Source: Epithemia pelagica
Taxonomy: Eukaryota > Protista > Bacillariophyta
Assembly: GCA_946965045.2 (NCBI GenBank)
Contig: OX337233.1
Coordinates: 186,001 to 250,000, forward strand
Length of the DNA stretch: 64,000 nt
Direction of reading: 5' to 3'
Each line of letters begins with the position of its first letter. The first letter of the stretch is position 1. Below are positions 1 through 61,348 of this stretch, piece by piece. The notes under the pieces were generated by a model. It worked only from the letters and a program-made list of their open reading frames with translations, had not been told where the DNA came from and ran no database searches. A program made the position numbers and the translations under genes.

Positions 1-174
1 TCTCTTGTGGTTGCTATCCTCGTCCGTATCGGGATGTCCAATTACGACCGAAGCATGATAGTCTCGCGCTCCTCCCATAAGAGCAGGCCAATCGTTTTCA
101 TTCCATTCAGGTGACTCGTCTAACAAAACAAGTTCCGACTGCCATGCTTGTTCTTTCAGTGTTGTTGTGGTCAT
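1..174 (-). CDS. Kelch-repeat protein K0, N-terminal part (cut by window edge)
   Basis: Manual translation from the ATG at 174 gives MTTTLKEQAWQSELVLLDESPEWNENDWPALMGGARDYHASVVIGHPDTDEDSNHKR, homologous to the N-termini of all other Kelch copies in the window. Confidence 0.85.
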   Translation of the reverse strand, partial: MTTTTLKEQAWQSELVLLDESPEWNENDWPALMGGARDYHASVVIGHPDTDEDSNHKR

Positions 175-270
175 GGTTGCAAAGGTTCCAACTGCAGAAC
201 TTATGAGGATCGAGACACTGTCTTGTAAGAGGCACGTGTAGGTTTGCTCTGTTGTTGTGATGCCGATGCT

Positions 271-298
271 GATGGGTGCGGACTGGAAGCACGACTGA
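271..298 (-). promoter_or_regulatory. Class A conserved upstream motif of Kelch genes
   Basis: GATGGGTGCGGACTGGAAGCACGACTGA (plus strand) recurs about 90-100 bp upstream of the ATG of K0, K2 (22433-22460), K4 (36032-36060), K6 (48112-48140) and K9 (61437-61464), and at an orphan site (10529-10556). Regulatory role is inferred from positional conservation. Confidence 0.5.
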
Positions 299-1663
299 GT
301 GCATGAAATCGATGGACCAAAGAGTGGGGTAGGAGTTTTCGTCACGAGACAAATCGTGACAGTTGCTTCGGCCGGTTGTTGTTGGCACTGCTCTTGTTGT
401 TCCATCCTGCTAGTACTGCTGGTTAATGGTCAGAGGCCAGCATGGCGGGTGCCCTGTCGTTGTCGTGGTACTGGCAAAGGTCAGTTTCGTCGCCATGTAT
501 AATTTTGGGATGCGTCGTCGTAGTAGTACAGTGTGTCGTGGTGCCTCTCGCAAAGAACCCCAGCAATACGTCTCTCTTGTCCGAGCCCTGCCAAACGTCG
601 TTGGGAACTAGCATATCACAATATAGGGCATGTGCTCCTCCGTCATCCTCTCGACTTGCAGAACACCAATGGCTGGATGCGCAGTGCCTGCAACCAAGAT
701 TGGTTTCCAATCCCCTCTAGTATAGTGTATAGTAGAACAACAATTTGTTGGTGGGTGCCAGCAAGAAGAGGTGGCCACCATGTGGCTTTGATGACCAAGT
801 GGAACAATTCTGGTCGAGACAAGTCTAGAGTCCTTTTAGTATTCGTTTCCAAGAAGAGGAAGAAACTTGACAAAACAGGAAAATCCAGTTGCTGCCGGCC
901 TTGAAGCGTAAGCGCAGAATGCCCGTAACAGTGATGAAGGTGATGTTTGTTGTTGTTGTTGGAATATCCAACAATACAATGAATGCTCCACAGTCTGTCT
1001 GGTTGTTGGTTCCTTACGCATACCGCGTCGACGAGAAGCAACGACACTGCCCACATGCTGAGGACGGAGACATGTGTAGCTTGCGAATCCTCTGGGAAGG
1101 TAGTTCGTCGACCGAGCTGTTGTTGACTGTTGACACTTGGCAACCTCGTTCGGCGTCTTTTACGAAAAGCACCGGCAGGTTGAGACGGACAAGCATTAAA
1201 AGTCGAAAGTCATCTGGAATTCATAATGCGGCGGTACGATTGCTGTAAAGCTGCGCAGTGCATGTTCTGATGATGGTGGGTTGTAATATATGGCCGTCCA
1301 CGTTCCACATCGTCCATTGTCGTCGACCCGTTTAGTTCGCCACGCAACAGTCCTAGCGTTTCTAATATCTTTTACTGTCCTAAAGATTTTGTTTAAGTTC
1401 AGGCTTTTTGGTGCACATCCATTATTAGTTCCCAGCGGGAGTGAGTCATGAGGATTAGTGAATGAGTCGTTTGAACAGCAAAAGCACGCGGCCCACCCCC
1501 AAGCATGGGGCGACTGGTCAGTCGCACTTTTCAAGTGCATTCCCTTAGTCACCCCCACGGCTCGAGGGCCCCAAATCGCCAATTTCTCGACTCTGATACA
1601 AACTGCATTTCACCTCCACAGAGCCACCACGGAGGCAAACTAGTGAGGACGATTACATCCATC

Positions 1664-2560
1664 ATGGCTACCCGCACCTCCAACCCCGACCACAAGGCTC
1701 TCACCAATACTACCCACGACGGTTCTACGAAAGCGCGGGCTCTCCAAAGCCTCTCCTCATTGGAGCAAGACACTCTAAATACAAGGCTCTCCGACTGCAA
1801 CAACAACAAGACAGATGACCATGCTGCAAGGGGCCAAGATAATCCTTTTCCATCCAACCGAACGCCTCCGGTCACCCATCTTTCTACTAATAATGAATCC
1901 CATGGGCGTCCTTCCCTCGAAGGCGCCGTCAACTCCGTATTCAGAGGCTGGCATGGAAAGACGGCCCGGTCATGGCAAGTCCATGCATGTAAAGAAGTAC
2001 TTCAACGCCAATTGAGCCGCAACCCCCCTTCCCTTCTACGTCCTATTCTTCTTGTTCGTTCAACTGGTGGTGGAAAATCTGCCGTGAGAGACGTTTCCGG
2101 AATACTTTGTGGTCCAATCACGATCACAATCGTTCCCCTTTTGAGTTTGGCCGCCGATCAAACCTCCAAGTTGACGGAGCTATCGTTGTCTCGAAGGCTG
2201 TCGAATCGCCTCCATGTCTACAATCTGGATGTCATTCGGTCGAAGAACCTGAATGACCTTCTTCGGAGCCATCTTGAGGCGTTACCCAACAACAAGACCA
2301 CGAAGAAAAGAGTATTTCTGTTCACATCACCGCAGAAACTCACACGAGACCCACTCTGGCAACAAACCATATCCATTTGTTGTCGCAATGGCACTTTGCG
2401 CTCTGTTGCTATCGACGAGTGCCACCTCTACGCAAGTTTACAAAACTTGTCAATCACGTCGACTTGGATAAGGGGTGGAGGCACTTTTGGTTGCTGGGTA
2501 GCCTCTTCGACGGCCTTCTGCAGCTTCTCTTCCCATTCGAGCCTGTACTTTTCCGAATGA
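1664..2560 (+). pseudogene. RecQ-family SF2 helicase, N-terminal ATPase half only
   Basis: Motif I LVRSTGGGKS, motif Ia IVPLLSLAADQ, FTSPQKL and motif II VAIDECH are present. Homology stops right after DECHLY (~2430) and motifs III-VI are missing. The likely ATG is 1664; the track ORF starts at 1505. Confidence 0.75.
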
Positions 2561-4371
2561 ATTTTCGTTTGGAACCGAAACCAAATATGTCTCAAATCAG
2601 ACGTGGCAGAACGATCTCCATGCGTCTCTTGGACAAGACGATGGAAGAGGGTCAATCTATCGTCCCCGTCGTCTTTCAGTTGCTTGAACACGTCATTCCA
2701 GTTGCGCTCGTTGTGATAATCGGCCTGAAGAAAAATAGCCTGTGGGTACGAGAACAACTCGAACCACGACAGGTGTTGTTCAAGACACTGTTCGGGAGGA
2801 GAAATGATGCTGCATGACTTGTCTGACAAAAATATTGGAAGCTTTAGGTGTATTGAACGCCGGGTGGACTCCTTCAAGGAATGAACAATGTCTTCGTATA
2901 ATAGATATGCACCCGTTACATGCTTGGTGTCGCCATTTTGTAAAACCCAGCCACATAGTTGCTTGAATTCTTTGCCGAGGCAAAAAACCGTTGGTAAATG
3001 TAGACATTGGGAGGTGTCTCGCCACACCTTGAGCCAACGCTTGCCATACCTTGGTGGAAGAAGGTCGTCATTGAAAAATAGAACAACTGGTTTACCTTCT
3101 GGAAGCAACCAGACGTCGTCAATAAGGAGTGTCCGTAAGCCAAATGACGAGACAAATTCTAGACGACTCTGTGTTGTATTGTTGGTTGCCTGGGAAGATG
3201 AACTTGCAGAATTGGACGTTGTCGTTGAGGTTTCTGTGGAATCAGCATCTGCTTGTTTGCGTTTCTTTGTCTTGCTTTGATATCGTTGCTGTTTGTTGGT
3301 TCCATTGGTCGATCGCATTACACCGTGCGTATAGTTTCTGCTCCGTCTCATTAATTGGGAACAAAAGTTGGACGTCAGTGTCAACGGTTGTTTTGGATCA
3401 GCGGTGGGAGAAACTATGATCAATGGTGCATTCCGCGTTGGAGCATCGCCAGGATTAGCGCATGGTAAAGGGGGGTGCCGCCGAAGGTGAAGCAAGAAGG
3501 CCCCTTCGGTTACCTTTTTGACCTTGAGCTTCAAGTTGGGGAAAGCTTGAATACGCTGATGCACAGCACCATGGCGAGTCAGTTGAAAGGTTGGAGCGGG
3601 GGCATTCGGGTCAGTATCTGCTGGTGGTGGATTCGCTGTGGACGGTTCTGCGGATTGAGGGGACGCTTCGTCGGATTGAAGAATGGCAGTAGCCGTGGTA
3701 TACTGGCTTTCGCGAATGCCAGTTGTGGTACGGTCATCTGATGCTTGATCATTGGTATTCAGAAGAGCTGCCATATTGGGACAAAGGGCATCATTGGGAG
3801 ACTTGTTGAGGATCATGCTTTTCGGAGGGGACGACTGAGTACCAAATTGGACATAACCAAAAGAATCACAACGATGTAGCAAGTTGAACGATACCGAGGA
3901 TAGACCCATGGTTGTTGGACGAGGAAACGTTTCATTGGGAGTAATACCAGCATTAACAGCCGCAATGGGAAAGGCCTGGGAGAAGGTGTCAGGGGAAGGA
4001 CGTCGCACGAAGCGAGAAGAGGATGCTTCTGATGGAATGGTCGACATGGAACTTGCTGCTTCAAGGCTCAGAAATGTTGATGGTTCGGATTGCTCGGATT
4101 GCTCCGAGGATCGACTTTGAGGGGCTGGTGGATCCTTCTGCGCCAAAGGGGTTTCATAGTCTTGCGGATTGACCGTGGGAAAGGAAGCGAAACGAGGCAG
4201 AGACGGAGGATTTCTGTTGCTGGTGGATGGGGTGGTGGTTTGATTTTTGGCAATGCTTTCATCTTGGTTGTTATCAGACGCCGTCGACCTTTCGGAAACA
4301 CTGCGAGCGTCAAATAGCTCCCTTACTTCCTTCTGAGTGAGACGGTGCCGTTTGTGGGAGGAAGACGACAT
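2428..4371 (-). CDS. Unknown protein inside the TIR element (low-complexity N-terminus, globular-looking C-terminal third), probably 3'-truncated
   Basis: ORF of 647 aa from the ATG at 4371 (track ORF 659 aa). It reads inward from the right TIR and stops where the helicase homology stops. No domain recognised. Confidence 0.55.
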   Translation of the reverse strand: MSSSSHKRHRLTQKEVRELFDARSVSERSTASDNNQDESIAKNQTTTPSTSNRNPPSLPRFASFPTVNPQDYETPLAQKDPPAPQSRSSEQSEQSEPSTFLSLEAASSMSTIPSEASSSRFVRRPSPDTFSQAFPIAAVNAGITPNETFPRPTTMGLSSVSFNLLHRCDSFGYVQFGTQSSPPKSMILNKSPNDALCPNMAALLNTNDQASDDRTTTGIRESQYTTATAILQSDEASPQSAEPSTANPPPADTDPNAPAPTFQLTRHGAVHQRIQAFPNLKLKVKKVTEGAFLLHLRRHPPLPCANPGDAPTRNAPLIIVSPTADPKQPLTLTSNFCSQLMRRSRNYTHGVMRSTNGTNKQQRYQSKTKKRKQADADSTETSTTTSNSASSSSQATNNTTQSRLEFVSSFGLRTLLIDDVWLLPEGKPVVLFFNDDLLPPRYGKRWLKVWRDTSQCLHLPTVFCLGKEFKQLCGWVLQNGDTKHVTGAYLLYEDIVHSLKESTRRSIHLKLPIFLSDKSCSIISPPEQCLEQHLSWFELFSYPQAIFLQADYHNERNWNDVFKQLKDDGDDRLTLFHRLVQETHGDRSATSDLRHIWFRFQTKIHSEKYRLEWEEKLQKAVEEATQQPKVPPPLIQVDVIDKFCKLA

Positions 4372-5231
4372 TATAGAAGATGTTCTGGACCACCGCACCT
4401 CCACCACCGTGATGAATGAGGGTGTGTTGCATGTGGTTTTCGGAATTTTGTATCAGAGTCGAGAGAGACCAGGTCGAGCCGTGGGGGTGAGTAGACAAAT
4501 GCACGAAGTGCATTCAATCACGCGTGATTGGACTCACCCCATGCTTGGGGGTAGCGGCCCACATGCGTCCCGACTGTTCATCCCCGCTGGGGGAAATCCA
4601 TAATAGATGGACGAAGCGAGATGACGGCGATGAGGAGGACGGCGACGACGACTTGACCTCTCATCGAGCAATTTCACCAACATGTCTCTTCCGGAGACGA
4701 TGATAGATAACGAAAACCATGAAGTCGCCTCCTTCAATCCGTGACAATTGAATTGCGGGGCCCAGGATGAGCATGAGAGTTTGCATGAACCGGCAAGTTC
4801 GAATGCGAATCTCTCCGATCTACTGTGAGCAAAGATCCGCAAAAAGATGCGACAACTCTCGATGGGGAGTCATTCTTGTCATCAATGACCCACCATGGTG
4901 GCTGCTCCGTGCCGTTGCCGTTCTGAATTCTGGAGCCGTGGCACTGGCAATGGGCAACTCAATTTGGGCTCGTAACCTGGCAAACCGTGTGGATCTTTGT
5001 CCTTGGCTCGTCCTCTGTTGAATCGTCTTGAAACAACTCTGGAGGGGAGTTTGGTTTTGCAGACGATTCATCGACTGTTCGGAATGGCACTTGGACGGCT
5101 GGACAACCAAGGTTTGTCCTCCCGTTGGTACCAGTGCAAGGGATCTCGGTGGAACATCGTACCATGGCACCATCTCCGATTTCCATTATTGCTGGCATGT
5201 GAAAAAGACAAGTAATATACAACAACCTTGA

Positions 5232-5645
5232 CCAAGACCAAATGCCTGGTGGCTATCGGGTTCGATTGCACAAGTTCAAGGAGGTCCCTATTGGCACTTG
5301 GCTGTCATTGCCAATGTCTATAACGATGGACGGTATCTGCTCGATTGGAAACCAGAATTTAACGAACATGAAGTGGAGAGGGTGAGTCGTTTTGATCCCC
5401 CTTCTGTGATTGGCGAAACTATTCGGTACGAGTGATGGATGAAGCAATCACATGGGTGTATGAAGATTGTCCTGTGCGGTTGACTTAGTCCGACACATGG
5501 CAAATGGCGATGCCTCTTTTACAGTCGAGGCAAATGGTTGTATACGACAGAGTTTGAGGACGGTGAGATTTGTGACAAGATTGAATTTGGTGATATTCAG
5601 CACGCTGTCAGAGAAAAGAACGAGGCGCGTCCTCTACAGTCATAG
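5232..5645 (+). pseudogene. Decayed Tudor/Agenet-like domain gene (not in ORF track)
   Basis: Manual translation gives WLSGSIAQVQGGPYWHLAVIANVYNDGRYLLDWKPEF and THGKWRCLFYSRGKWLYTTEFEDGEICDKIEFGDIQHAV, separated by stops and frameshifts. The patterns resemble Tudor-type beta-barrels. Two differences from the duplicate at 55540-55953 (GCA/GCG, TTT/TTC) are synonymous in this frame. Confidence 0.35.
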
Positions 5646-5889
5646 TGATTGTAGTTTGTTACTGTTGGATTCCAGCGAAAAAAGCGACTTCTGCCAAACC
5701 ATCTCTTGAATCTGATCGGTAGAGGCTGGCAAAGCAATTCACACAGCGATAAAAACGGTCAACAAAAAGCAACGCTGTATTACATGAGTGATTATTCTAT
5801 AGTTTCGCCATTGTAGGGCATACATGCAACATGTTGTACATTTCAGGATTATCCTTCCCTTGTTCATTGCGATGCGTATTGGTCGTGCT

Positions 5890-6225
5890 TCATTTAGATT
5901 TTTTGACGTTGACATGGTACTGCTCACACAGTCGTCGAAAACACAACGAATTCTTTTCTATAAGTGGTACTGTCGCGCAGGTAGGATTCTTGTCCCCACC
6001 AATGGCGGTAATTTGATCCGCAAGAGTCACTAGAATGCAGCGTTCAAGACGATTTCCAAAGGGTGGGAGATTCCACACGCGGGTGCGGTGCGTATCCAAG
6101 GTTTCCACAGTTGAATTGCGTCGTCGTCCCGCCACGACCAGCCAGGATCCCACAACAATCATTGCACAAGAACATCGTGGAAAGGAAAGAACCAAATCAG
6201 AATAAGTGATCCATGAATGATGACT
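5890..6225 (-). pseudogene. Kelch gene C-terminal fragment
   Basis: SWITYSDLVLSFPRCSCAMIVVGSWLVVAG...VETLDTHRTRVWNLPPFGN...CFRRLCEQ matches the last blades and tail of the full Kelch copies. No upstream blades are present. Confidence 0.8.
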
Positions 6226-6471
6226 CTGTGTCCTGCAAAGTGCCATGATGCCACCACAAAGTCCCAGATTCTTGTCTCACGACCGCACGACCACGGCAGT
6301 GGCTCTTCCACATCTAGAGACAAAAATGTGGTCTTCCTTCCCCGCCTTTGACAACAAACCAGCACATTCTATCTTGCAACATAATCTTTCAACGTTTGAG
6401 TAAACCACTTACTAGGTTCTAGGATTACAATCGAACATAGAAAACAAGTCAGTGACTTGAGAACAAAACGT

Positions 6472-7698
6472 CTAGTAGGCTTCATCCATCCCTTCATCAC
6501 CACGGTGAGTATTGGACCTTGCGCGTTTAAGAGTTGATGTCGATGTAAAGAAGGGTGAGATATCTTCATCTCGGATACCGGCATTTTCAAGAGAATGATA
6601 CCATCCGTTCGATTGGTGCTCACATAGTCGACGAAAACACCACGAATTCCTATCCATTAGTGGCAATGTCGCACAGGAAGTAGTGCGCCATCCACCAATC
6701 ACGGCAACTTGATTGGCAACAGTCACCATACTGCAGCCCCAATGATCTTCTTGCAGTCCAGGGAGATTCCACACGCGCTTGCAGTGCGTATCCAAGACTT
6801 CCACGGTTCGATTGGGTCGTCCCACTACCACCAGACACGATCCCACGGCAACCACTGCACAAGGGCTTCGTGCATTGGAAAGCCTCAACTCTGAATGAGT
6901 GGTCCAGGTGGGTGAGAAAGAAATCAACGTCGAGTCAGTTTCCTTTTCTGTCTCATCACTGTCACAGGGTGTTGTGTCGTCCAAATACTCCACCGAGTCA
7001 AGATTGCCGTACCCGTTTCGGCCTCCAACGACAAAGATGCGGTGACCAACGACTGCGCTGCCAAAAAATGATCGAGGAATATTCATGCTTGGTCCCGCAG
7101 TGACAGTGTGGTTCCTTGTATCAATAATGTCCACCGACGACAAATAACCATCGTTGTAGCCACCGTTGTAGCCACCCATTACAACAATATATCGGTTGTG
7201 CACCGCAACCGCACAACATCCTCTTCGTTGCGTTGATAAGCGACATGTCAATGTCGTCTATTGGATCTCGTGTGTGCTGCTGGTTGTTAAAGATAATTGA
7301 AGTATATCCTTGGCATCGATTCGTTCCATGCAATCCAAAGATCCTATATTGAATCCTCCAATCACGTAGATGCCGCCATTGCACACAACAGCGGCATGTC
7401 CTTCACGACTCTTGTTCATGGGCGGACCCTCTCGCCATTGCATGTCTGGGTCTGCCAGATTTAATAACAGAACGGAATCGAGACTGCCTGGATCTACTTG
7501 ATATCCGCCCAACACGACGACCGTTTGTCTCTTGCTGTTGCTATCTTTGTCAGTATCGAGATGATTTAGTACGACGGATGCATGATACTCTCGCGCTCCT
7601 CCCACAAGAGGAGGCCAGTCATTTTGATTCCATTCAGCTGTCTCGTTCTTCAGGACAAGGCCCGACTGCCATGCTTGTTCTTTTAATGTCACGGACAT
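6472..7698 (-). pseudogene. Kelch-repeat gene K1 with in-frame nonsense codon
   Basis: Track ORFs 7258-7794 and 6472-7251 are in the same frame. TAG at 7258-7260 corresponds to TGG (Trp) in the duplicate K8. Family start MSVTLKEQAW is at 7698. Confidence 0.88.
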
Positions 7699-7791
7699 GG
7701 TTCTTAACGTTTTGACCGCACAATTTATGTGGAGTGCGTTTGCGGCTGTTGCGAGAGAGAATATAATAGAAGCATCAGGACTCTTAGAATA

Positions 7792-7797
7792 CACGTG
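7792..7797. promoter_or_regulatory. Class B upstream motif (CACGTG G-box/E-box in CACGTGGAAG, followed by TCGCACATAGACTTCATGAC)
   Basis: The same motif lies upstream of K3 (33049), K5 (45591) and K8 (58087), with a variant upstream of K7 (~53220-53340). Function is inferred from position only. Confidence 0.4.
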
Positions 7798-8099
7798 GAA
7801 GCTCTGGAGCCCAAATAGCGTCTGTCGTACGTACGATATCGCACATAGACTTCATGACAGCACCACCATATAAGATGTATCTTTCCGCCAAAAGATGTGC
7901 AAATCCACCCAGATCTGTTCCCAATAACAAAAACAAAACCAAACGATGGACAACATCCACAAGAACAAGGCGTCAAAGCATCCTCATGTCTTTCGTTGAC
8001 TAGCATAAGGAATTTGGGCAAAAAACATTGTTCCATCCGAAAGCCATGTTACATGTTACATCAAAACGACCGACAGCCTTATAGAGCCAAACCAGATGA

Positions 8100-9050
8100 G
8101 GAATGAGGACCCCACTGTCACGACAACAAAAAAAGAAACCAGCCTTCGGAATGAACAAGGCCAATTGTGGACGGGTGCATCTGCGGATGGGTCAGGAATG
8201 TACAGGATTGGAACAAGCCTCGAGTGTGGTCAACAGTCACTCAGCTGTGGTAGAACAACGAGTGGTACAACAACCACCACCAGTCAAGCTTTTCCCTGGC
8301 TTCATCAAGCAACCATGATGACTAGCATGATGACGACGACTGCAGCCCTGCCTCAAGACAATAGCAGCAGGACCTTGAAGACACAACAACAAAGTCTCAA
8401 CCACCCAAACCACAACAACTGGCAACCGGCAACATCCACACCACCACTCTGACACTCGCAAGTGGCACTGGTGCAGATGTCCGATTCTTGGTTGGTGTTG
8501 AATTCCACTCGCTCGGGGACATAGTGGTTGTTGAGGCAGTCCCACACAGAATGTTTCCCAGATGTTTACTTACCCACAACCCTTTTTGCCATTAACGTCC
8601 GAACCATTGACCCCTGTTCCGACCACCACTTTCTCAAGGCAAGAGAACAATCAACCGTAGCCAGAGCAAATGCTCACCGTCATTGAGGCTTGGTTAGATC
8701 AAGGTAGCTCCGAGCATAGCGCGCCTCTGTCTGTCTCCACAGTCACCAGAGTGTCTCCCTGTTATGTGGACACGGAGACGATGCATTCCAAGGATGGAAA
8801 CGGGTGGTGCGAGGGAGTATTACTTGCCACGGAGAAATACCGCAGGGACTGCCAAAGGACTCAACAATACGACAAAAATAGCACTCAACACAGCGCAAAA
8901 CTCTGCATAATCCATGACATTGTTTTCTGGTTTCGGAACAGTCGCGTTCTCCTAGACATGCCGTATAGCATCATTAATGATTTCATTTCTACTATAGGGA
9001 TTCACATCATAATTCCACAGGTAGCAGATAATAAGACAACTGTTTGAGAT
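8100..9050 (+). repeat. Duplicated spacer block (near-identical to ~45800-46735; first part also at ~58300-58590)
   Basis: Identical translated stretches (QLWTGASADGSGMYRIG..., MLTVIEAWLDQGSSEH...) occur at both loci. Confidence 0.85.
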
Positions 9051-13825: not shown

Positions 13826-13860
13826 AGACGGCACGCGTTGATCAATTTGAGCTCGGTCGA
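13791..13860. repeat. Perfect 35-bp tandem duplication that frameshifts LINE ORF2
   Basis: AGACGGCACGCGTTGATCAATTTGAGCTCGGTCGA occurs twice (13791-13825, 13826-13860). Both ORF2 halves contain SSTELKLINACRL. Confidence 0.95.
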
Positions 13861-19753: not shown

Positions 19754-20559
19754 CCAGAAACCAGAAACAACCACTACACTTTCTGGTGTAGGGTGTGGTA
19801 GTAAAGCTACGTTAAGGGCCAGAAACTATAGGTAAAGCTGTGTCAACGTCACTTTCAATTTCGCCTTCCACGAAATTATAAAACGACAAAAATAAAAGAT
19901 ACCATCAGCACCACAATGTGTCTGTCGCCGTCGTCGCCGTCTTTGGTTTCGGAGATTGACCTTTTCGCGCCTTCTGGCCGCGTTTTCTGCTGTGACTTGC
20001 TGTCATGTCTCTCCTGTGGAGGAAGACTCCAAAGAAGACTCTAGCAAGATGAACATCCTCAACGACAACTTTCATCGCAACAAGCTAGAAATCGTACCTT
20101 GGCTTTCGATTCACAACAGGAGGTCTAGTGCAGCAAAGAACAGAACAACAAAAAGAAGAGCACTAGGGCGATGGTATGCTTCCTCATCCACATATCTTTT
20201 ATGGAACGAGAATCAACAGCAAGACCAGGCCAATCTCTTTGTGTTGGGGCACCGCATGGCAGTCTGGTCGCCAATTTTCGAGGACCCTTTCTCGACACGA
20301 CACCATGAGGACCTGCTGGATCGATCACAAAGTCGCCCCATTGGAGGTAGTTGCGCCGGTGACGAGAAGCGCAGTACTATGGATTGAAGTATGGAACGCA
20401 ATTTAACTCCCTCCTGATGCGTCCGATTGGAGTAGTGAAGAACTGATCATGGGAAAGGGTCGCATCGCCCCTTCAAGTCTAATACATACGAAGATTCAAG
20501 CTGGGTGTCGGTGTGGAACGACAAGGCAGCAACGCTAACCAGAATCCAACGAAGAAGAA

Positions 20560-51970: not shown

Positions 51971-53158
51971 TCAAGTTCCATCCTTCCCTTCATCACCACG
52001 GCGTGTATTGGGCCTTGCGCGTTTATGAGCTGATGTCGAGGTGGAGAAGGGTGAAATATCAGCATGTTGGATATTCCTTCCTTCCCCAAAAAGAAACCAT
52101 CTGTTGGGCTGCTGCTCACAGAGTCGTTGAAAACACCACGTATGCTTGTCCAGTAGTGGTAATGTCGCACAGGTAGGACTGCCAAAACCACTTATCACGG
52201 CAACTTGATTGGCAACAGTCACCATACTGAAGTCATCGCGGCGATTTCCGCATGGTAGGAGATTCCACACACGGTTGCGGTTCGTATCCAATACTTCCAT
52301 ACTAACATTGCCTCGTCCTCCCGCCACAACCAGACAGGATCCCACGGCAACCACTGCACAAGAAGTTCGTGGGTTGGAGAGCACCATTTCAGAGTGAGTG
52401 TTCCAAGCGGACGAGAAGGAAATGACTGTAGACAAAGTGTCGTCTTTTCTCTCCTGCGTAAATTCCAAATACTCCACCGAGTCAAGATGGCCATTGTCGT
52501 TATGACCTCCAACGACAAAGATGCGGTGGCCAATCACCGCACTGCCACAAAGTTGTCGTGGAACAGTCATGGATGGTCCCGCAGTGACAGTGTGGTTGTT
52601 TGTATCTATAATATCCACCGACGACAAATAACGATCGTTGTAATAGCCACCCATTACAACGATGTATCGGTTGTGAACCGCAGCAGCACAACATCCATGT
52701 CGTTCCTTTGACAACCGACATGTCAATGTCGTCCAATGACTGTCCTGCGTGGTGATGGTTGTCAAAGATGATTGCAGAAAATAATTGGCATCAATTCGTT
52801 CAATACAAGCCAAAAGTCCTCGACTGTATCCTCCCATCACGTACACGCCGCCATTGCAAACAACAGCGGCATGTCCATAACATCTCTTGTTCATGGGCGG
52901 CCCTTCTCGCCAGTGCCTGTCTGGGTCTGACAGATTCAATGCAAGAATGGAGTTGACATAGCCTTGGCCTTGTTTGAATCCTCCCAACACGACGACGGTT
53001 TGCTCCTCGTTGTTATCGGTAGGATTCAGTACGACGGAAGCATGATAGTAACGCCATCCACCCTCAAGAGGAGGCCAGTCCTCGAAATTCCATTCAGGTG
53101 TCTCTTCCAAAAGTACAAGGCCCGACTGCCATGCTTGGTCTTTCAGTGTCGTTGTCAT
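51971..53158 (-). CDS. Kelch-repeat protein K7 (395 aa, intact)
   Basis: Uninterrupted Kelch ORF from MTTTLKDQAW. The longer 502-aa track ORF includes non-homologous upstream sequence. Confidence 0.92.
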   Translation of the reverse strand: MTTTLKDQAWQSGLVLLEETPEWNFEDWPPLEGGWRYYHASVVLNPTDNNEEQTVVVLGGFKQGQGYVNSILALNLSDPDRHWREGPPMNKRCYGHAAVVCNGGVYVMGGYSRGLLACIERIDANYFLQSSLTTITTQDSHWTTLTCRLSKERHGCCAAAVHNRYIVVMGGYYNDRYLSSVDIIDTNNHTVTAGPSMTVPRQLCGSAVIGHRIFVVGGHNDNGHLDSVEYLEFTQERKDDTLSTVISFSSAWNTHSEMVLSNPRTSCAVVAVGSCLVVAGGRGNVSMEVLDTNRNRVWNLLPCGNRRDDFSMVTVANQVAVISGFGSPTCATLPLLDKHTWCFQRLCEQQPNRWFLFGEGRNIQHADISPFSTSTSAHKRARPNTRRGDEGKDGT

Positions 53159-54805
53159 GATCCCAATGTCGACAAGAAATGGCAGCACGAGAGCGGGTCT
53201 ATTTGTATAATAGAGCAACGCGTGGAAGTGGAAGCTTTGCTTTTTTGCGTGGAGACCGGCGCGCGTGGAGACAGAAAAGGTGTGCCTGTCCTGCGTACGA
53301 TGGTGAAGGGCAGTCAATCGCACATAGATTTCATGACAAGCCCCCAAAAGTATCTTTTGCTGTAAAAGATACGACGACGAGGGAGAGAGAGAGAGCGACA
53401 TTTGTGATGAAGAGTCCTTCTGTATGATGAATAGGTCCACAGATTGACAATCCCTTATTTCCAAGTCATCTCGTCCCACGCCATTTATGGAGCAACACCA
53501 TTCTTCCCTTGGTCCTATACAGTCTGTTCACAACGACAACAACAACAGAGAGAATGGTCTTGTTGACTTCTTGATCCAATGATTCGAATGTGCACCGCTC
53601 ATTGGGTTGTTTTCGAGAATGTCACGTGGATTTGGTTGGACCGCAAAGGTTGGTCCTGTGGCAGACGCGTATTGCACTGGTTCAAGGGCCTCCATTCGCC
53701 AAGGTGGGTGTCAGGACCGGTGCTACATTTGCCAATGGGTGATGGTGTTGTCTCGATTGAAAACCACAAGAGTTCAAGAAGGAAAAACTAGACCGGATGA
53801 GTCGTCGCTTGGATGCACCTGGCGTCGAGAACGTACAAGAGTTTTGTGAGTCAGGCTATGTCAAATTGCCGGTGTCAAACCACTAATGACGAAAATACAC
53901 CGTTGCAACAATAGAGGCCCTGGAAATTGCAGGATGAAACTGACAGATTCGAGAGTTGCATTCTTGTGGGTCCTTTCCAAAAACATCCAGTTCCGGGATT
54001 TCTGAAACAGAGGTGGTAGTACAACGGCAAGAACATGAACAAGACAATGACAGAGTGGCCTTGTCCAATGCTTGTGTGTTCTCTGACATCAAACACCGAT
54101 CGCGAACATGGATACTGACTGTGAATCCAAGCCTGGTAGTAGCTGCAGCGGCGGCAACATTGCAGTTTGAGCGTGGCTCGATCGATTCTAGGACCAAGTG
54201 GAACAATTCTGGTCGAGACAAGTCTAGAGTCCTTTGAGTATTCGTTTCCAAGAAGAGGAAGAAACTTGACAAAACAGGAAAATCCAGTTGCTGCCGGCCT
54301 TGAAGCGTAAGCGCAGAATGCCCGTAACAGTGATGAAGGTGATGTTTGTTGTTGTTGTTGGAATATCCAACAATACAATGAATGCTCCACAGTCTGTCTG
54401 GTTGTTGGTTCCTTTCGCATACCGCGTCGACGAGAAGCAACGACACTGCCCACATGCTGAGGACGGAGACATGGGTAGCTTGCGAATCCTCTGGGAAGGT
54501 AGTTCGTCGACCGAGCTGTTGTTGACTGTTGACACTTGGCAACCTCGTTCGGCGTCTTTTACGAAAAGCACCGGCAGGTTGAGACGGACAAGCATTAAAA
54601 GTCGAAAGTCATCTGGAATTCATAATGCGGCGGTACGATTGCTGTAAAGCTGCGCAATGCATGTTCTGATGATGGTGGGTTGTAAGATATGGCCGTCCAC
54701 GTTCCACATCGTCCATTGTCGTCGACCCGTTGTTCGCCACGCAACAGTCCTAGCGTTTCTAATATCTTTTACTGTCCTAAAGATAGGCTTTTTTCCATTA
54801 TTAGT

Positions 54806-54902
54806 TCCCAGCGGGAGTGAGTCATGAGGATTAGTGAATGAGTCGTTTGAACAGCAAAAGCACGGCCCACATGCGACCCGACTGTTCATCCCCGCTGGGG
54901 GA
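54806..54902. mobile_element. ~100-bp MITE-like element with CCCAGCGGG / CCCGCTGGG inverted ends
   Basis: Inverted repeats at 54807-54815 and 54891-54899. The same unit is split by the RecQ element in copy A (1431-4591). Related ends occur at ~32930 (TCCCCAGCGGGGG) and ~62667 (CCCCCGCTGGGGG). No clear TSD. Confidence 0.5.
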
Positions 54903-55539
54903 AATCCATAATAGATGGACGAAGCGAGATGACGGCGATGAGGAGGACGGCGACGACGACTTGACCTCTCATCGAGCAATTTCACCAACATGTCTCTTCC
55001 GGAGACGATGATAGATAACGAAAACCATGAAGTCGCCTCCTTCAATCCGTGACAATTGAATTGCGGGGCCCAGGATGAGCATGAGAGTTTGCATGAACCG
55101 GCAAGTTCGAATGCGAATCTCTCCGATCTACTGTGAGCAAAGATCCGCAAAAAGATGCGACAACTCTCGATGGGGAGTCATTCTTGTCATCAATGACCCA
55201 CCATGGTGGCTGCTCCGTGCCGTTGCCGTTCTGAATTCTGGAGCCGTGGCACTGGCAATGGGCAACTCAATTTGGGCTCGTAACCTGGCAAACCGTGTGG
55301 ATCTTTGTCCTTGGCTCGTCCTCTGTTGAATCGTCTTGAAACAACTCTGGAGGGGAGTTTGGTTTTGCAGACGATTCATCGACTGTTCGGAATGGCACTT
55401 GGACGGCTGGACAACCAAGGTTTGTCCTCCCGTTGGTACCAGTGCAAGGGATCTCGGTGGAACATCGTACCATGGCACCATCTCCGATTTCCATTATTGC
55501 TGGCATGTGAAATAGACAAGTAATATACAACAACCTTGA

Positions 55540-55953
55540 CCAAGACCAAATGCCTGGTGGCTATCGGGTTCGATTGCGCAAGTTCAAGGAGGTCCCTATT
55601 GGCACTTGGCTGTCATTGCCAATGTCTATAACGATGGACGGTATCTGCTCGATTGGAAACCAGAATTCAACGAACATGAAGTGGAGAGGGTGAGTCGTTT
55701 TGATCCCCCTTCTGTGATTGGCGAAACTATTCGGTACGAGTGATGGATGAAGCAATCACATGGGTGTATAAAGATTGTCCTGTACGGTTGACTTAGTCCG
55801 ACACATGGCAAATGGCGATGCCTCTTTTACAGTCGAGGCAAATGGTTGTATACGACAGAGTTTGAGGACGGTGAGATTTGGGACAAGATTGAATTTGGTG
55901 ATATTCAGCACGCTGTCAGAGAAAAGAACGAGGCGCGTCCTCTACAGTCATAG
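55540..55953 (+). pseudogene. Second copy of the decayed Tudor/Agenet-like gene
   Basis: Duplicate of 5232-5645 at offset 50308, with the same disruptions. Confidence 0.33.
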
Positions 55954-56198
55954 TGATTGTAGTTTGTTACTGTTGGATTCCAGCCAAAAAAAGCGAATTC
56001 TGCAAAACCATCTCTTGAATCTGATCGGTAGAGGCTGGCAAAGCAATTCACACAGCGATAAAAACGGTCAACAAAAAGCAACGCTGTATTACATGAGTGA
56101 TTATTCTATAGTTTCGCCATTGTAGGGAATACATGCAACATGTTGTACATTTCAGGCTTATCCTTCCCTTGTTCATTGCGATGCGTATTGGTCGTGCT

Positions 56199-56530
56199 TC
56201 ATTTAGATTTTTTGACGTTGACGTGGTACTGCTCACACAGTCGTCGAAAACACAACGAATTCTTTTCTATAAGTGGTACTGTCGCGCAGGTAGGATTCTT
56301 GTACCCACCAATGGCGGTAATTTGATCCGCAAGAGTCACTAGAATGCAGCGTTCAAGACGATTTCCAAAGGGTGGGAGATTCCACACGCGGGTGCGGTGC
56401 GTATCCAAGGTTTCCACAGTTGAATTGCGTCGTCGTCCCGCCACGACCAGCCAGGATCCCACAACAATCATAGCACAAGAACATCGTGGATAGGAAAGAA
56501 CCAAATCAGAATAAGTGATCCATGGATGAT
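56199..56530 (-). pseudogene. Kelch gene C-terminal fragment (duplicate of 5890-6225)
   Basis: Near-identical translation PWITYSDLVLSYPRCSCAMIVVGSW...CFRRLCEQ. Confidence 0.8.
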
Positions 56531-56780
56531 GACTCTGTGTCCTGCAAAGTGCCATGATGCCACCACAAAGTCCCAGATTCTTGTCTCACGACCGCACGAC
56601 CACGGCAGTGGCTCTTCCACATGTAGAGACAAAAATGTGGTCTTCCTTCCCCGCCTTTGACAACAAACCAGCACATTCTATCTTGCAACATAATCTTTCA
56701 ACTTTTGAGTAAACCACTTACTAGGTTCTAGGATTACAATCGAACATAGAAAACAAGTCAGTGACTTGAGAACAAAACGT

Positions 56781-57993
56781 CTAGTAGGCTTCATCCATCC
56801 CTTCATCACCACGGTGAGTATTGGACCTTGCGCGTTTAAGGGTTGATGTCGATGTAAAGAAGGGTGAGATATCTTCATCTCGGATACCGGCATTTTCAAG
56901 AGAATGATACCATCCGTTCGATTGGTGCTCACATAGTCGACGAAAGCACCATGTATTCTTGTCGATTAGTGGCAATGTCGCACAGGAAGTAGTGCGCCAT
57001 CCACCAATCACGGCAACTTGATTGGCAACAGTCACCATACTGCAGCCCCAACGATCTTCTTGCAGTCCAGGGAGATTCCACACGCGCTTGTAGTGCGTAT
57101 CCAAGACTTCCACGGTTCGACTGGGTCGTCCCACTACCACCAGACACGATCCCACGGCAACCACTGCACAAGGGCTTCGTGCATTGGAAAGCCTCAACTC
57201 TAAATGAGTGGTCCAGGTGGGTGAGAAAGAAATCAACGTCGAGTCAGTTTCCTTTTCTGTCTCATCACTGTCACAGGGTGTTGTGTCGTCCAAATACTCC
57301 ACCGAGTCAAGATTGCCGTACCCGTTTCGGCCTCCAACGACAAAGATGCGGTGACCAACGACTGCGCTGCCAAAAAATGATCGAGGAATATTCATGCTTG
57401 GTCCCGCAGTGACGGTGTGGTTCCTGGTATCAATAACATCCACCGACGACAAATAGCGAACGTTGAAGCCACCTATTACAACAATATATCGGTTGTGCAC
57501 CGCAACCGCACAACATCCTCTTCGTTGCGTTGATAAGCGACATGTCAATGTCGTCCATTGGATCTCGTGTGTGCTGCTGGTTGTTAAAGATAATTGAAGT
57601 ATATCCTTGGCATCGATTCGTTCCATGCAATCCAAAGATCCTATATTGAATCCTCCAATCACGTAGATGCCGCCATTGCACACAACAGCGGCATGTCCTT
57701 CACGACTCTTGTTCATGGGCGGACCCTCTCGCCATTGCATGTCTGGGTCTGCCAGATTTAATAACAGAACGGAATCGAGACTGCCTGGATCTGCTTGATA
57801 TCCGCCCAACACGACGACCGTTTGTCTCTTGCTGTTGCTATCTTTGTCAGTATCGGGATGATTTAGTACGACGGATGTTTGATACTCTCGCGCTCCTCCC
57901 ACAAGAGGCGGCCAGTTTTTCATCCCATTCAGGTGTCTCGTCCAAAAGGACAAGGCCCGACTGCCATGCTTGTTCTTTTAATGTCACGGACAT
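56781..57993 (-). pseudogene. Kelch-repeat gene K8 with N-terminal frameshift
   Basis: MSVTLKEQAW...EWDEK (ATG 57993) and WPPLVGGAREY... are in different frames. The shift is at the T5 run 57916-57920, so a homopolymer sequencing error cannot be excluded. Confidence 0.8.
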
Positions 57994-60148
57994 GGTTCTT
58001 AACGTTTTGACCGCAGAATTTATGTGGAGTGCGTTTGCGGCTGTTGCGAGAGAGAATATAATAGAAGCATCAGGATTCTTAGAATACACGTGGAAGCTCT
58101 GGAGCCCAAATAGCGTCTGTCGTACGTACGATATCGCACATTGAACAAACGATGGACAACATCCGAAAGAACAAGGCGTCAAAGCATCCTCATGTCTTTC
58201 GTTGACTAGCATAAGGAATTTGGGCAAAAGACATTGTTCCATCCGAAAGCCATGTTACATGTTACATCAAAACGACCGACAGCCTTTTATAGAGCCAAAC
58301 CAGATGAGGACCCCACTGTCACGACAACAAAAAAAGAAACCAGCCTTCGGAATGAACAAGGCCAATTGTGGACGGGTGCATCTGCGGATGGGTCAGGAAT
58401 GTACAGGATTGGAACAAGCCTCGAGTGTGGTCAACAGTCACTCAGCTGTGGTAGAACAACGAGTGGTACAACAACCACCACCAGTCAAGCTTTTCCCTGG
58501 CTTCATCAAGCAACCATGATGACTAGCATGATGACGACGACTGCAGCCCTGCCTCAAGACAATAGCAGCAGGACCTTGAAGAGACAATGACAAAGTCTCA
58601 ACGTCCCACATTGTGGCACGATTGAATGCCACTCAAGACCTTGCGACAGTTGGGAATTGGGATGCTACGCCGCTTGGCCAATATCTCACATTGCGTAGTC
58701 GAATTGGTCAGGTTCCACCGCGCGGTTTGGTGTTCTGACGGACAATCATCACTTGACCTTTGAGTTTGCCGTGTTCCAGGTAAAACGTCTCGCTGACCTG
58801 ACGTCCGATTTGGCCGTGGTGCACATGTCCGATTCTTGGTGGGTGTTGAATTCCACATACTGGTTGTTCAGGCAGTCTCACACCACAAGGTTTCCCAGAC
58901 TTTTACTTACCCACAACCCTTTTTGCCATTGACGTCCGAACCATCGAGCCCTGTTCCGACCACATTCTCCTCAAGGCAAGAAAACAATCAACCGTTGCCA
59001 CAGCAAACGCTCACCGTCATGGATACTTGGTTCGATCAGGTATAGCTCCGGGCATGTACACGAATTTCGCCATTCCGACTGCGACGAGCAAAACCATTCG
59101 ACCACAACCGCCTCGGGCGACTCGTGTTCCAACACCAACAACCATTCATACGGTGTGGGTGGCAAGGCTTCCATAATGGCCAAGACATGATCGGCGGCAT
59201 TCGTTGTCGTGGTTGTGTTGTTGGTGCTGCTGCTGAGTTCGGTACGAGGCACAAAGGATGTAGTGATCAAGGTCCAACACTGCTGTTCGACAGCGTTGTT
59301 GTCGTGCAACAAGGTTTCGGTGGAACTGGCATTGAGGGGCAAGACATCGCGATGGGGAGCGGCATGTTTCCAGGCATGAGCAATTGAACGAGCAATGCTG
59401 CGACAGAAAGTAGTGGTGGGGGGAGGTGTCCTGTCTGTCTCGTCGCAACGTCGAGACTCGATTCCTTGTTGTCGTTCTGGTCCATTGCGACAATTGGGAC
59501 GACCCTCGATCTGATTTGGTGGGTTCCTCTTGGACTCGTCATCTTCATTGGGCCATTCCGGCTTGACATCACATGACAAGTGCAGCAACGTATTGCGATT
59601 CACATGCAACAGCAACTAGAAGAAGGCATTGCGATTGGAGCGGTGACTCCTCCGAAAGGGACAACCTGCTCTTGACCAAAATGTCGGAATTGGATATGAG
59701 ATGGTCCTCCCTCCTTACTTCCATCCAAAGTCGACCCATTGTCATCTTTCGAGGAAGAACCATTCGAAGCGGACAACATCAGGTCCAACAAGGTTTCGCC
59801 TTGGTGTGCTTCTGTTCCTGCTCCTCTCATTGGTTGTTCCACAGCTACCATTCCATGGACCACGCTGTGTTATGTAGAGTGCCATGATGCCACCAAGAAG
59901 TACCCGATTCTAGTCTCACGACTACACAGCCACGGTGGTGGCACTGTCCCACAACTGACAGGAAACAGGTAATGGCCGAAGCGCAGTACCACTTTTAGAG
60001 ATATAAAAGTGGGATCGATCCTTCCATAACAAACAAGCACCTTCTTTCTTGCAACATGTTCTTTCTACTTTTGAGTAAACACTTAATACTAGGTTCTAGT
60101 ATTGCAATCGAATGTAGAAAACAAGTCAACCACCAGAGAAATAAACGG

Positions 60149-61348
60149 CTAGGCTTCATCCGCCCCTTCATCACCACTTTGAGTATTCGACCTTGCGCAT
60201 TGACGTGCTGATGCCAATGTCAAGATATCAGCATCTCGGATACCTATACCTTCAAGAGAATGATACCATCCGTTCGATTGTTGCTCACAGAGTCGACGAA
60301 AACACCACGTATTCTTGTCCAGTAGTGGTAATGTTGCACAGGTAGGATTGCGCCATCCACCAATCACGGCAATTTGATTGGCAGCGGTCCCCATAGTACA
60401 ACCATTGTGGTAGTTAGTGAATGGTCGGAGATTCCACACACGGTTGCGGCGCGTATCCAACACTTCCACAGATGATTCGAATCCTCCCGTCACAACCAGA
60501 CAGGATCCCATCGCAACCATTGCACAAGATCTTCGTGCATTGGAAAGCCTCAACTCCGAATGATTGGTCCAGGTGGGTGAGAAAGAAATGAACGTCAAGC
60601 CAGTTTCCTTTTTTGTCTCAACACTGTCACAGGGTGTTGTGTCGTCCAAATACTCCACCGAGTCAAGATTGCCATGCTCATTACGGCCTCCAACGACAAA
60701 GATACGGTGCCCAATGACCGCACTGGAACAGCATGCTCGTGGAAGATTCATGGATGGTCCAGCAGCGACAATGTGATTGTTGGTATCAATAATATCCACT
60801 GACGACAAATAGCAATCGTTGTAATAGCCACCCATTACAACGATGTATCGGTTGTGAACCGCAACAGCACAACATCCTGATCGTCTCGTTGATAAGCGAC
60901 ATGTCAATGTTGTCCAATGGCTCTTCTTCGAGCTGCTTGATGTCGAAGATGGTTGGAGCAAATCGGTGGCATTAATTTGTTCGATACAATCCAAACTTGA
61001 ATATCTATTAGTGTATCCTCCCATCACGTAGACCCCTCTATTGCACACAACAGCAGCATGTTTATAACGACTCTTGTTCATGGATGGCCCTTCTCGCCAG
61101 TTCTTGTCCGGCGTTGCTAAATTGAGTACAAGAACTGAATCGAGCTCGCCTTGACCTGCTCGGTATCCACCCAACACGACGACGGTTTGTCTGTTGTTGT
61201 CCGCACCGAGATGATTTAGCACGACCGATGTATGATACTCTCGCAATCCACCCTCAAGCGGAGGCAAGTCCTCGAAATTCCACTCGGGTGTCTTGTCGGA
61301 AAGGACAAGGCCTGACAGCCATGCTCGTTCTTTCAGTGTTGTGGTCAT
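60149..61348 (-). CDS. Kelch-repeat protein K9 (399 aa, intact)
   Basis: Uninterrupted Kelch ORF from MTTTLKERAW. Confidence 0.92.
   Translation of the reverse strand: MTTTLKERAWLSGLVLSDKTPEWNFEDLPPLEGGLREYHTSVVLNHLGADNNRQTVVVLGGYRAGQGELDSVLVLNLATPDKNWREGPSMNKSRYKHAAVVCNRGVYVMGGYTNRYSSLDCIEQINATDLLQPSSTSSSSKKSHWTTLTCRLSTRRSGCCAVAVHNRYIVVMGGYYNDCYLSSVDIIDTNNHIVAAGPSMNLPRACCSSAVIGHRIFVVGGRNEHGNLDSVEYLDDTTPCDSVETKKETGLTFISFSPTWTNHSELRLSNARRSCAMVAMGSCLVVTGGFESSVEVLDTRRNRVWNLRPFTNYHNGCTMGTAANQIAVIGGWRNPTCATLPLLDKNTWCFRRLCEQQSNGWYHSLEGIGIRDADILTLASARQCARSNTQSGDEGADEA

Follow-up and report, generated by a model that had tools for sequence, protein, structure and literature searches.

Does a gene that joins LRRs to a TIR domain work together with the Kelch genes that surround it, or do the two families only share a piece of unstable DNA? 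The question is raised by a stretch of 64,000 nucleotides (hereafter, the window), for which the preliminary description proposed a sensor or decoy repertoire of Kelch proteins coupled to a TIR effector. To our knowledge, innate immunity in diatoms and other microalgae is nearly uncharted, and no published description of a Kelch/LRR-TIR pairing was found.

The Kelch array and its turnover

All Kelch copies detected in the window (tblastn and Pfam) lie on the minus strand; nine are of complete length, a tenth is truncated at the window start, and two short fragments are present as well:

1-366, minus strand: N-terminal part of a Kelch gene, truncated at the window edge (tblastn, aa 9-117 of K60)
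5851-6216, minus strand: C-terminal Kelch fragment of ~120 aa (aa ~270-411; tblastn)
6478-7737, minus strand: K06, one in-frame stop (codon 7258-7260)
21146-22360, minus strand: K21, intact (ORF bounds)
31588-32855, minus strand: K31, frameshift near 32380 (tblastn)
34735-35937, minus strand: K34, intact, head-to-head with the LRR-TIR gene
44263-45465, minus strand: K44, intact, tail-to-tail with the LRR-TIR gene
46812-48060, minus strand: K46, in-frame stop (tblastn)
51971-53173, minus strand: K51, intact
56157-56522, minus strand: C-terminal Kelch fragment, duplicate of 5851-6216 (tblastn, self-blastn)
56787-58032, minus strand: K56, frameshift near 57920 (tblastn, self-blastn)
60149-61543, minus strand: K60, intact (ORF bounds; conserved start ~190 nt inside)

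The ten co-oriented, Kelch-only genes of ~400 aa described previously are confirmed with respect to strand, length and the lack of an extra domain, but only five copies (K21, K34, K44, K51 and K60) are intact. Likewise, the arrangement of five Kelch genes on each side of the LRR-TIR gene is correct as a count within the window, but it is set by the window boundaries, since the array runs past them.

The Kelch proteins measure ~400 aa if counted from the conserved ATG, with ~35 residues ahead of blade 1; the longer upstream ORF extensions are non-coding, since K21 and K46 carry stops there. Matches to Kelch_1 are strong (E 1e-27 to 1e-32), propeller-level models (PF24681) match as well, and six hydrophobic-GG blade signatures in the alignment predict a six-blade propeller, while BTB, BACK, F-box or any other extra domain was not matched by Pfam in the window Kelch proteins. 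The family is large: at least 609 relatives were found at E<=1e-10, and the best 120 of these come from one ENA source and ~21 contigs, with 17 of the 120 residing on the window's own 1.05-Mb contig. The nearest natural solved propeller sequences belong to BTB-Kelch and F-box-Kelch adaptors, e.g., KLHL12 (E 1.5e-17) and KEAP1 (E ~1e-13; KLHL20 is of the same type). Unlike these adaptors, the window Kelch proteins lack BTB, BACK and F-box, and the family counts hundreds of tandem copies in this one genome.

The array is interspersed with duplicated and mobile DNA:

793-8407: counterpart of 54192-58608 through a recent segmental duplication (96-98% identity), holding a Kelch fragment and a Kelch copy (self-blastn)
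1496-4555: 3-kb insertion breaking this duplicated segment (self-blastn)
1505-2560, plus strand: ORF inside the 3-kb insertion, weak DEAD-helicase match
2428-4407, minus strand: ORF inside the 3-kb insertion, no family matched
11768-19774, minus strand: large element, probably a retroelement, with three long ORFs (712, 1300 and 688 aa) and a weak endonuclease/exonuclease/phosphatase match
22959-29889, plus strand: retrotransposon with RVT_1
36390-38097: non-autonomous DNA-transposon-like insertion of 1.7 kb; its terminal inverted repeats (46 nt) match perfectly, and short repeats occur inside

Birth-and-death turnover, as claimed earlier, is evident from the segmental duplicate, the disabled copies (4/9 complete ones), the two fragments and the four mobile-element insertions. 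K56 is a 98% duplicate of K06, yet its lesion differs; K31 has a Kelch counterpart with ~98% identity on a different contig (L004 15986-17260; L001 and the like denote LRR-TIR loci outside the window). A copy of the retrotransposon at 22959-29889 (93-98% aa-identical) is inserted beside the LRR-TIR gene of L005. The insertion at 36390-38097, multi-copy in the reads (joint 36193>38131; 7-20x depth), widens the spacer between K34 and the LRR-TIR gene to 2.6 kb, compared with about 0.7 kb without it.

Sequence variation among the Kelch copies is distributed unevenly. The gene-wide median of pN/pS is 0.52; for the seven codons that follow each GG doublet the ratio reaches 1.02, vs. 0.53 elsewhere (permutation p=0.002). 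The variable residues cluster in the loops with which KEAP1/KLHL propellers bind their substrates.

The LRR-TIR gene and its predicted activity

The gene spans 38775-41991 on the plus strand and comprises the following features:

38775-41686, plus strand: exon 1
38775-40064, plus strand: ORF1, RI-type LRRs
40036-40039, plus strand: run of A with one extra base (comparison with seven paralogs)
40087-41739, plus strand: ORF2, with LRRs, a three-helix bundle and the TIR domain, in a frame other than that of ORF1
41443-41445, plus strand: codon of the invariant glutamate (E453 of ORF2, motif W-P-x-A-E-L)
41687-41794, plus strand: predicted intron of 108 nt (GTAAGT...CAG), donor and acceptor kept in seven paralogs
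41795-41991, plus strand: exon 2, basic C-terminal tail, paralog indels in multiples of 3

Indels within the predicted intron are not multiples of 3 among the paralogs. The single plus-strand LRR/helical/TIR locus noted previously is thus real, with its domains in place, but in the assembly the single extra base, which is missing from the seven paralogs, divides it between two frames (stop at 40062-40064); the evidence for this frameshift comes from the assembly. Most likely, the window copy is a recently inactivated member of its family. Lesions are also present in L002, L003, L004, L005, L006 and L007, and about half of the LRR-TIR copies, the window copy included, are broken.

N-terminal LRRs (~20 repeats of the RI/NLRP type) are followed by the three-helix bundle and the C-terminal TIR domain. 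Neither NB-ARC nor NACHT was matched by Pfam in ORF1, ORF2 or the precomputed domains of the paralogs. Neither a signal peptide nor a membrane span separating the LRRs from the TIR was seen with a hydropathy heuristic (as distinct from a dedicated predictor): over 19-residue stretches, hydropathy peaks at 0.77 for ORF1 and at 1.43 for ORF2, the latter peak being a TIR beta-strand. By the same heuristic, no stretch with the hydrophobicity expected of a membrane helix was found in either the Kelch or the LRR-TIR family, and both proteins are predicted to be soluble. Toll-like receptors also carry LRRs N-terminal to a TIR, but their LRRs are of the extracellular type, whereas here they are of the ribonuclease-inhibitor/NLRP type, and the helical bundle replaces the transmembrane helix. 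LRR variation resides on the face formed by the strand and the ascending loop, with an entropy of 1.02 bits at the strand x positions vs. 0.76 in the remaining repeat (one-sided p=0.04).

The TIR assignment is based on Pfam TIR_2 (PF13676, 29.4 bits, above the cutoff of 28), with TIR (PF01582) slightly under its cutoff (20.1 vs. 21.3), and on the AF2 model of residues 270-550 (pLDDT 76.6), the top 25 fold matches of which are TIR domains without exception. Its best fold matches include AbTir (7uxu) and SPARTA TIR-APAZ (8spo), with Z 10.9 (VIA), rmsd 2.7-3.1 A (2.7 A for AbTir) and 120 residues aligned, as well as PdTIR (3h16). The latter is the sole sequence match among solved structures (E 8e-4). 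The conserved glutamate pointed out in the preliminary description is aligned with the PdTIR Glu in the motif W-P-x-x-E-L and remains unchanged in 26/26 family sequences; this position is catalytic in NAD-cleaving TIRs. The TIR evolves under purifying selection (dN/dS 0.24-0.34), and we infer from this and from the retained catalytic-type glutamate that it may cleave NAD+. Unlike in prokaryotic defence systems, the predicted NADase-type TIR here comes after ~20 RI-type LRRs and a three-helix bundle in the protein, which is encoded by an intron-bearing eukaryotic gene.

Homologs of the same LRR-helical-TIR build (~1000-1200 aa, full-length identity 30-36%) exist in Epithemia clementina, e.g., KAL7561740.1, KAL7558674.1 and KAL7575651.1, and carry the same invariant TIR motif. 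Unlike the window gene, they have ordinary neighbours (EDR2_C, Fcf1, His_Phos_1), and the surrounding 10 kb are free of family Kelch genes at the three loci inspected in this sole other species examined. Such surroundings would suit the reading in which neither family is immune and their adjacency is meaningless, the Kelch proteins being, e.g., substrate adaptors or enzyme partners expanded for another reason, and the LRR-TIR a protein of signalling or NAD metabolism that ended up in a region rich in transposons and prone to duplication. The heavy load of pseudogenes and transposons agrees with it, as does the Kelch dN/dS (~0.5 gene-wide and ~1 in the loops, i.e., not clearly >1), which fits relaxed constraint. 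At the same time, the variation is centred on the loops that bind ligand in KEAP1/KLHL propellers, with the scaffold conserved, the TIR is closest to NAD-cleaving defence TIRs (AbTir, SPARTA) with the Glu kept, the LRRs are of the type present in intracellular immune receptors, and haptophyte cells resistant to a virus induce TIR genes (PMC12489294). We consider this non-immune reading improbable.

Recurrence of the Kelch/LRR-TIR adjacency

The preliminary description proposed to test whether LRR-TIR homologs occur near Kelch arrays elsewhere. In the part of assembly ERZ21939226 that was read they do: 11/11 LRR-TIR loci have a family Kelch no farther than 10 kb away, often head-to-head. The Kelch-adjacent loci include the window, L001-L007, L010 and L012, with head-to-head pairs in the window, L001, L002, L004 and L012, a retrotransposon between the two genes at L005, and co-oriented genes at L010. 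Further full-length LRR-TIR members are located on the three other Kelch-richest contigs, and each contig with at least 8 of the 120 best Kelch relatives also carries an LRR-TIR member. At the Epithemia clementina loci inspected the linkage is not seen (0/3), and the linked copies of this genome share one ancestor: they are monophyletic with respect to the Epithemia clementina homologs (support 100/100). Moreover, collinear DNA in L001, L005, L007 and L012 begins ~600 bp ahead of the LRR-TIR start and extends across the downstream Kelch, and K44 falls into one clade with the downstream Kelch neighbours at L012 and L007. The single clade together with the collinear flanks points to approximately one ancestral linkage event followed by co-duplication.

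The most economical account of these findings is that the Kelch birth-and-death array and the LRR-TIR gene were joined once and have been copied together since, with two immune-like families, both evolving fast, now sharing one cluster, much as in mixed resistance-gene clusters or defence islands; we assign this explanation a probability of roughly 55%. The window would then represent part of a lineage-specific, very large array in which stand-alone six-blade Kelch genes are arranged in tandem in a diatom-like genome, evolving by segmental duplication, inter-copy recombination, pseudogenisation and transposon insertion. An LRR/three-helix/TIR gene may have entered the array once in the lineage, and the copied block would consist of a minus-strand Kelch, a spacer of ~0.7-0.9 kb, the plus-strand LRR-TIR, ~2.3 kb of DNA and another minus-strand Kelch. 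Every LRR-TIR copy would be found amid Kelch genes due to shared ancestry, not repeated independent recruitment. Members of both families resemble soluble proteins of intracellular recognition or signalling. Gene structure, recurrent linkage, common descent, lesions and selection pattern are established from the sequences; NADase activity, an immune role and any cross-talk between the families are putative.

Inertia of one block does not sit easily with two observations. The linkage is kept at L010, the deepest LRR-TIR paralog (~40% aa identity), and the short-spacer head-to-head arrangement recurs, which could reflect selection for co-regulation. In addition, mobile elements aside, LRR-TIR is the only recognisable gene family other than Kelch inside the arrays examined.

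In a developed form of the coupling proposed initially, the diversified Kelch proteins would serve as sensors or decoys of pathogen molecules, and one LRR-TIR, shared by many of them, would act as an NAD+-cleaving executor when a Kelch partner is perturbed. Such a two-component module would gain from the linkage without exception at the loci read and on the Kelch-rich contigs, from the ancestral head-to-head spacer being compatible with a bidirectional promoter, from the hypervariable Kelch loops, from the constrained TIR with its catalytic-type Glu and from the predicted solubility of both proteins. The common ancestor of the LRR-TIR copies reduces this linkage, however, to about one independent event, and the Epithemia clementina loci do without a family Kelch. 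Conservation of the upstream DNA barely differs from that of neutral sites (71-76% identity vs. dS 0.24-0.44), about half of the LRR-TIR genes, the window copy among them, are broken, and the LRR domain has a variable face of its own, so the protein is not obviously in need of a separate sensor. The upstream Kelch genes at L001, L002, L004 and L012 are compatible with one clade (AU p=0.14), but the addition of the window's K34 to it is rejected (AU p=0.008; in both tests the groups were chosen post-tree), which tentatively argues against a fixed partner pair in the window. Overall, the module is conceivable but doubtful. Its fullest form, an undescribed intracellular immune system in diatoms of this lineage, with hundreds of Kelch recognisers or decoys and embedded LRR-TIR NAD+ executors, maintained in linkage and co-regulated from short divergent spacers, would, judging from sequence features, be rather unlikely.

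Comparison with plant resistance clusters and implications

Plant genomes harbor mixed resistance-gene clusters and head-to-head NLR pairs, e.g., of the RRS1/RPS4 type. The arrays described here resemble them in the fast-evolving, tandem birth-and-death organization of recognition-type genes, recombining paralogs, numerous pseudogenes and transposons, and in the placement of a TIR-bearing gene head-to-head with a partner gene. Unlike in plant NLR pairs, NB-ARC/NACHT is missing, the partner is a stand-alone Kelch propeller instead of an NLR, ~10 or more Kelch genes accompany each LRR-TIR gene, and for the window the data do not support any particular lineage as a co-evolving partner.

A caution of wider relevance is that repeated adjacency inside one genome can represent a single evolutionary event. 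The locus nevertheless yields candidates: an NB-less LRR-helical-TIR family with an NADase-type TIR and a huge Kelch family varying at positions that bind ligand in related propellers. Cooperation between the Kelch and LRR-TIR proteins would make for a new receptor-executor architecture; even without it, the locus clearly exemplifies the co-amplification of two recognition-type families in one birth-and-death compartment.

Kelch copies and turnover of the array

The window sequence is eukaryotic and diatom-like and belongs to a 1,051,330-bp contig of the ENA assembly ERZ21939226. Pfam scans and tblastn revealed one family of Kelch-only proteins of ~400 aa recurring across the window, on the minus strand throughout; five of the nine complete-length copies (K21, K34, K44, K51, and K60) are intact.

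Features of the window: coordinates, strand where assigned, description

1-366, minus: Kelch copy truncated by the window start
5851-6216, minus: Kelch C-terminal fragment, ~120 aa
6478-7737, minus: K06, complete-length Kelch, in-frame stop
11768-19774, minus: large element with three long ORFs (712, 1300, and 688 aa), weak endonuclease/exonuclease/phosphatase match only
21146-22360, minus: K21, complete-length Kelch, intact
22959-29889: two-ORF retrotransposon (1007 + 1345 aa), RVT_1
31588-32855, minus: K31, complete-length Kelch, frameshift
34735-35937, minus: K34, complete-length Kelch, intact
36390-38097: 1.7-kb element bounded by perfect 46-nt terminal inverted repeats, separating K34 from the LRR-TIR gene
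38775-40064, plus: LRR-TIR ORF1, RI-type LRRs
40087-41739, plus: LRR-TIR ORF2, further LRRs, helical region, TIR domain
44263-45465, minus: K44, complete-length Kelch, intact
46812-48060, minus: K46, complete-length Kelch, in-frame stop
51971-53173, minus: K51, complete-length Kelch, intact
56157-56522, minus: Kelch C-terminal fragment, ~120 aa
56787-58032, minus: K56, complete-length Kelch, frameshift
60149-61543, minus: K60, complete-length Kelch, intact

The count of five Kelch genes to either side of the plus-strand locus, made in the preliminary description, is numerically correct, but the array is not bounded by the window edges: 17 of the best 120 relatives of K44 reside on the same contig. 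An ATG just 5' of a T-L-K-E motif is conserved across all Kelch copies. A hidden N-terminal domain in the upstream extensions of the Kelch ORFs was ruled out, since stops in K21 and K46 mark these longer ORFs as non-coding. Pfam detected no BTB, F-box, or further domain in the window Kelch proteins and no family in 20 other ORFs of the window.

The birth-and-death turnover initially ascribed to the array is borne out by several features. The segment 793-8407, broken up by a 3-kb insertion (1496-4555), duplicates 54192-58608 with 96–98% identity; the Kelch genes of the duplicate pair, K06 and K56, carry different lesions, and both the large element and the retrotransposon are placed between Kelch copies. 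No copy of the large element was found at the other LRR-TIR loci of the assembly (designated L below). The retrotransposon has a near-identical copy (93–98% at the amino acid level) at L005 (1333-8257), again between a Kelch and the LRR-TIR gene; therefore, this element has been recently active, inserting repeatedly in these arrays. The 1.7-kb element has internal 16-nt and 8-nt repeats and is multi-copy in the reads, where its depth is 7–20x that of the gene next to it; a non-autonomous DNA transposon is its probable identity. The reads also contain a joint bypassing 36194-38130, and the element is possibly missing from another allele or paralog.

In the tree, the window Kelch copies interleave with those from other contigs, one cross-contig pair being ~98% identical. 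A Kelch copy with ~750 bp of its flank (31588-34031) is 97–98% identical to L004 15986-18121, even though the LRR-TIR proteins encoded at these loci are only ~60% identical; this likeness points to a recent transfer or conversion between arrays. Dispersed repeats of 0.7–1 kb, 95–97% identical, also occur between Kelch genes (8061-9069/45765-46769 and 30623-31318/63312-64000). Additional pieces of LRR-TIR genes lie dispersed between Kelch genes at L012 (2533-3714) and L010 (1620-2056 and 6154-7343), so the LRR-TIR family, as Kelch does, leaves remnants in the arrays.

The median pairwise dN/dS of the nine window Kelch copies is 0.52. In the seven codons 3' of each GG doublet, pN/pS reaches 1.02 vs. 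0.53 elsewhere (permutation p=0.002), although a value of ~1 from nine copies does not, alone, prove positive selection; other high-entropy positions fall in the loop preceding strand A of each blade. Among natural proteins of solved structure, the KEAP1/KLHL propellers are the nearest relatives, and the atlas look-alikes of the Kelch protein comprise generic KLHL-type clusters only. In the KEAP1/KLHL propellers, the corresponding loops are the substrate-binding B-C and D-A loops, and the variation seen here fits a diversifying binding face.

Structure and domains of the LRR-TIR gene

The intact members of the LRR-TIR family (proteins P0012, P0284, P0285, P0286, and P0013) are encoded by single ORFs of ~1000–1150 aa. 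As judged by three-frame translation and DNA alignment with seven paralogs, the window gene has one extra base in an A run at ~40036-40039, which moves the frame so that a stop is reached at 40062-40064; as assembled, this copy is frameshifted. Downstream, a predicted 108-nt intron (41687-41794) precedes a 197-nt last exon. The intron is supported by the conserved GTAAGT donor and CAG acceptor and by its indels being out of frame, whereas those of the last exon are multiples of three. Four sequencing runs, none of which is listed as RNA, yielded no splice joint within the gene and no entry at the position of the extra base. A frameshift or tiny intron common to L002, L003, and L004 at LRR residues ~316–351 was ruled out, as the three differ in their indels and sites.

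The presence of a TIR domain with the conserved glutamate is supported by several lines of evidence. The domain matches Pfam TIR_2 over the cutoff; its only sequence match among solved structures is PdTIR (3h16), with the glutamate aligned, and E453 of ORF2 (codon 41443-41445) does not vary across 26 sequences. The helical-TIR part was refolded alone, the fold search with the whole of ORF2 being swamped by LRRs; the model of residues 270–550 (pLDDT 76.6) retrieved AbTir and the SPARTA TIR at Z 10.9, and all of the top 25 hits were TIRs. The three-helix bundle gave generic helical matches only, and the LRRs are similar to those of NLRP1 and ribonuclease inhibitor; no NB-ARC, NACHT, or membrane-like segment was found in the window gene. 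Five short proteins (P0073, P0092, P0119, P0157, and P0158; 258–330 aa) harbor the three-helix-plus-TIR module, apparently without LRRs, and keep the same invariant Q-K-K-W-P-x-x-E motif. Judging from these sequences, the helical-TIR unit may represent a conserved core onto which LRRs were added.

Relative to the intact paralogs, dN/dS is 0.24–0.34 in the TIR and 0.5–0.9 in the LRR parts. The LRR variation, obtained from a W-anchored parse of nine repeats (the first automatic parse gave just three), peaks at the x positions of the beta-strand and the next loop (1.02 vs. 0.76 bits, p=0.04). Synonymous divergence from L001 and L012 over 40894-41736 is mosaic, ~0.10 in the TIR vs. 0.45–0.53 in the adjacent helical part, which suggests an exchange between paralogs, e.g., gene conversion of the TIR region.

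Recurrence and origin of the Kelch–LRR-TIR linkage

Family Kelch genes were found within 10 kb at all 10 further LRR-TIR loci read in ERZ21939226 (L001–L007, L010, and L012 among them), a very strong association among the loci read. The three extra full-length LRR-TIR members are placed on the three other Kelch-richest contigs; among metagenome contigs, a search for more loci returned two contigs of 2.3–2.8 kb, too short to display neighbours. The layout of a minus-strand Kelch, a short spacer, a plus-strand LRR-TIR gene, ~2.3 kb, and another minus-strand Kelch is common to L001, L002, L004, L012, and the window, where the spacer is ~0.7 kb without the inserted element. At L003 (3625-7827) and L006 (4324-8526), a minus-strand ORF of 1400 aa with no Pfam family separates a divergent Kelch gene from the LRR-TIR gene; both loci are array edges adjoined by ordinary genes, L003 by those for AdoMet decarboxylase and spermine synthase and L006 by a rhomboid gene.

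The expectation that LRR-TIR genes elsewhere would lie near Kelch genes held at every locus read in this assembly but at none of three loci of Epithemia clementina (0/3 within 10 kb), the sole other species reached with assembled homologs. Nor are the loci independent: the DNA is collinear at several of them from ~600 bp 5' of the LRR-TIR start to the downstream Kelch inclusive, the Kelch genes downstream of LRR-TIR in the window, at L012, and at L007 group together as a clade, and on a protein tree the nine LRR-TIR copies of this genome form a single clade vs. the three E. clementina homologs (100/100). Some loci may be alleles or very young duplicates of each other; L007 and L012, for instance, have near-identical Kelch copies in common.

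The functional coupling put forward earlier, with Kelch proteins as sensors or decoys and the LRR-TIR protein as the executor, has a probability of roughly one in four. It is kept viable by the L010 paralog, still Kelch-linked at ~40% identity, by the repeated head-to-head layout, and by the LRR-TIR family being, mobile elements aside, the sole other gene family seen within the arrays. Against a fixed functional pair stands the rejected grouping of K34 with its upstream counterparts at four further loci (AU p=0.008, for groups picked after tree inspection), as well as the breakage of about half of the LRR-TIR copies by differing lesions, a fraction similar to that of Kelch. The DNA upstream of the LRR-TIR genes, which also counts against such a pair, is conserved no better than neutral sites (71–76% identity at dS 0.24–0.44), lending a specially conserved divergent promoter no support either way. 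A single upstream or downstream partner-Kelch clade was not found, and the literature search returned no description of a Kelch and TIR pairing in diatoms, nor anything relevant to it.

The simplest history would be one ancestral block of Kelch and LRR-TIR genes, later amplified. Overall, the Kelch and LRR-TIR parts are real and immune-like, and their linkage is real as well; common descent with co-duplication accounts for this linkage, which therefore amounts to roughly one event.
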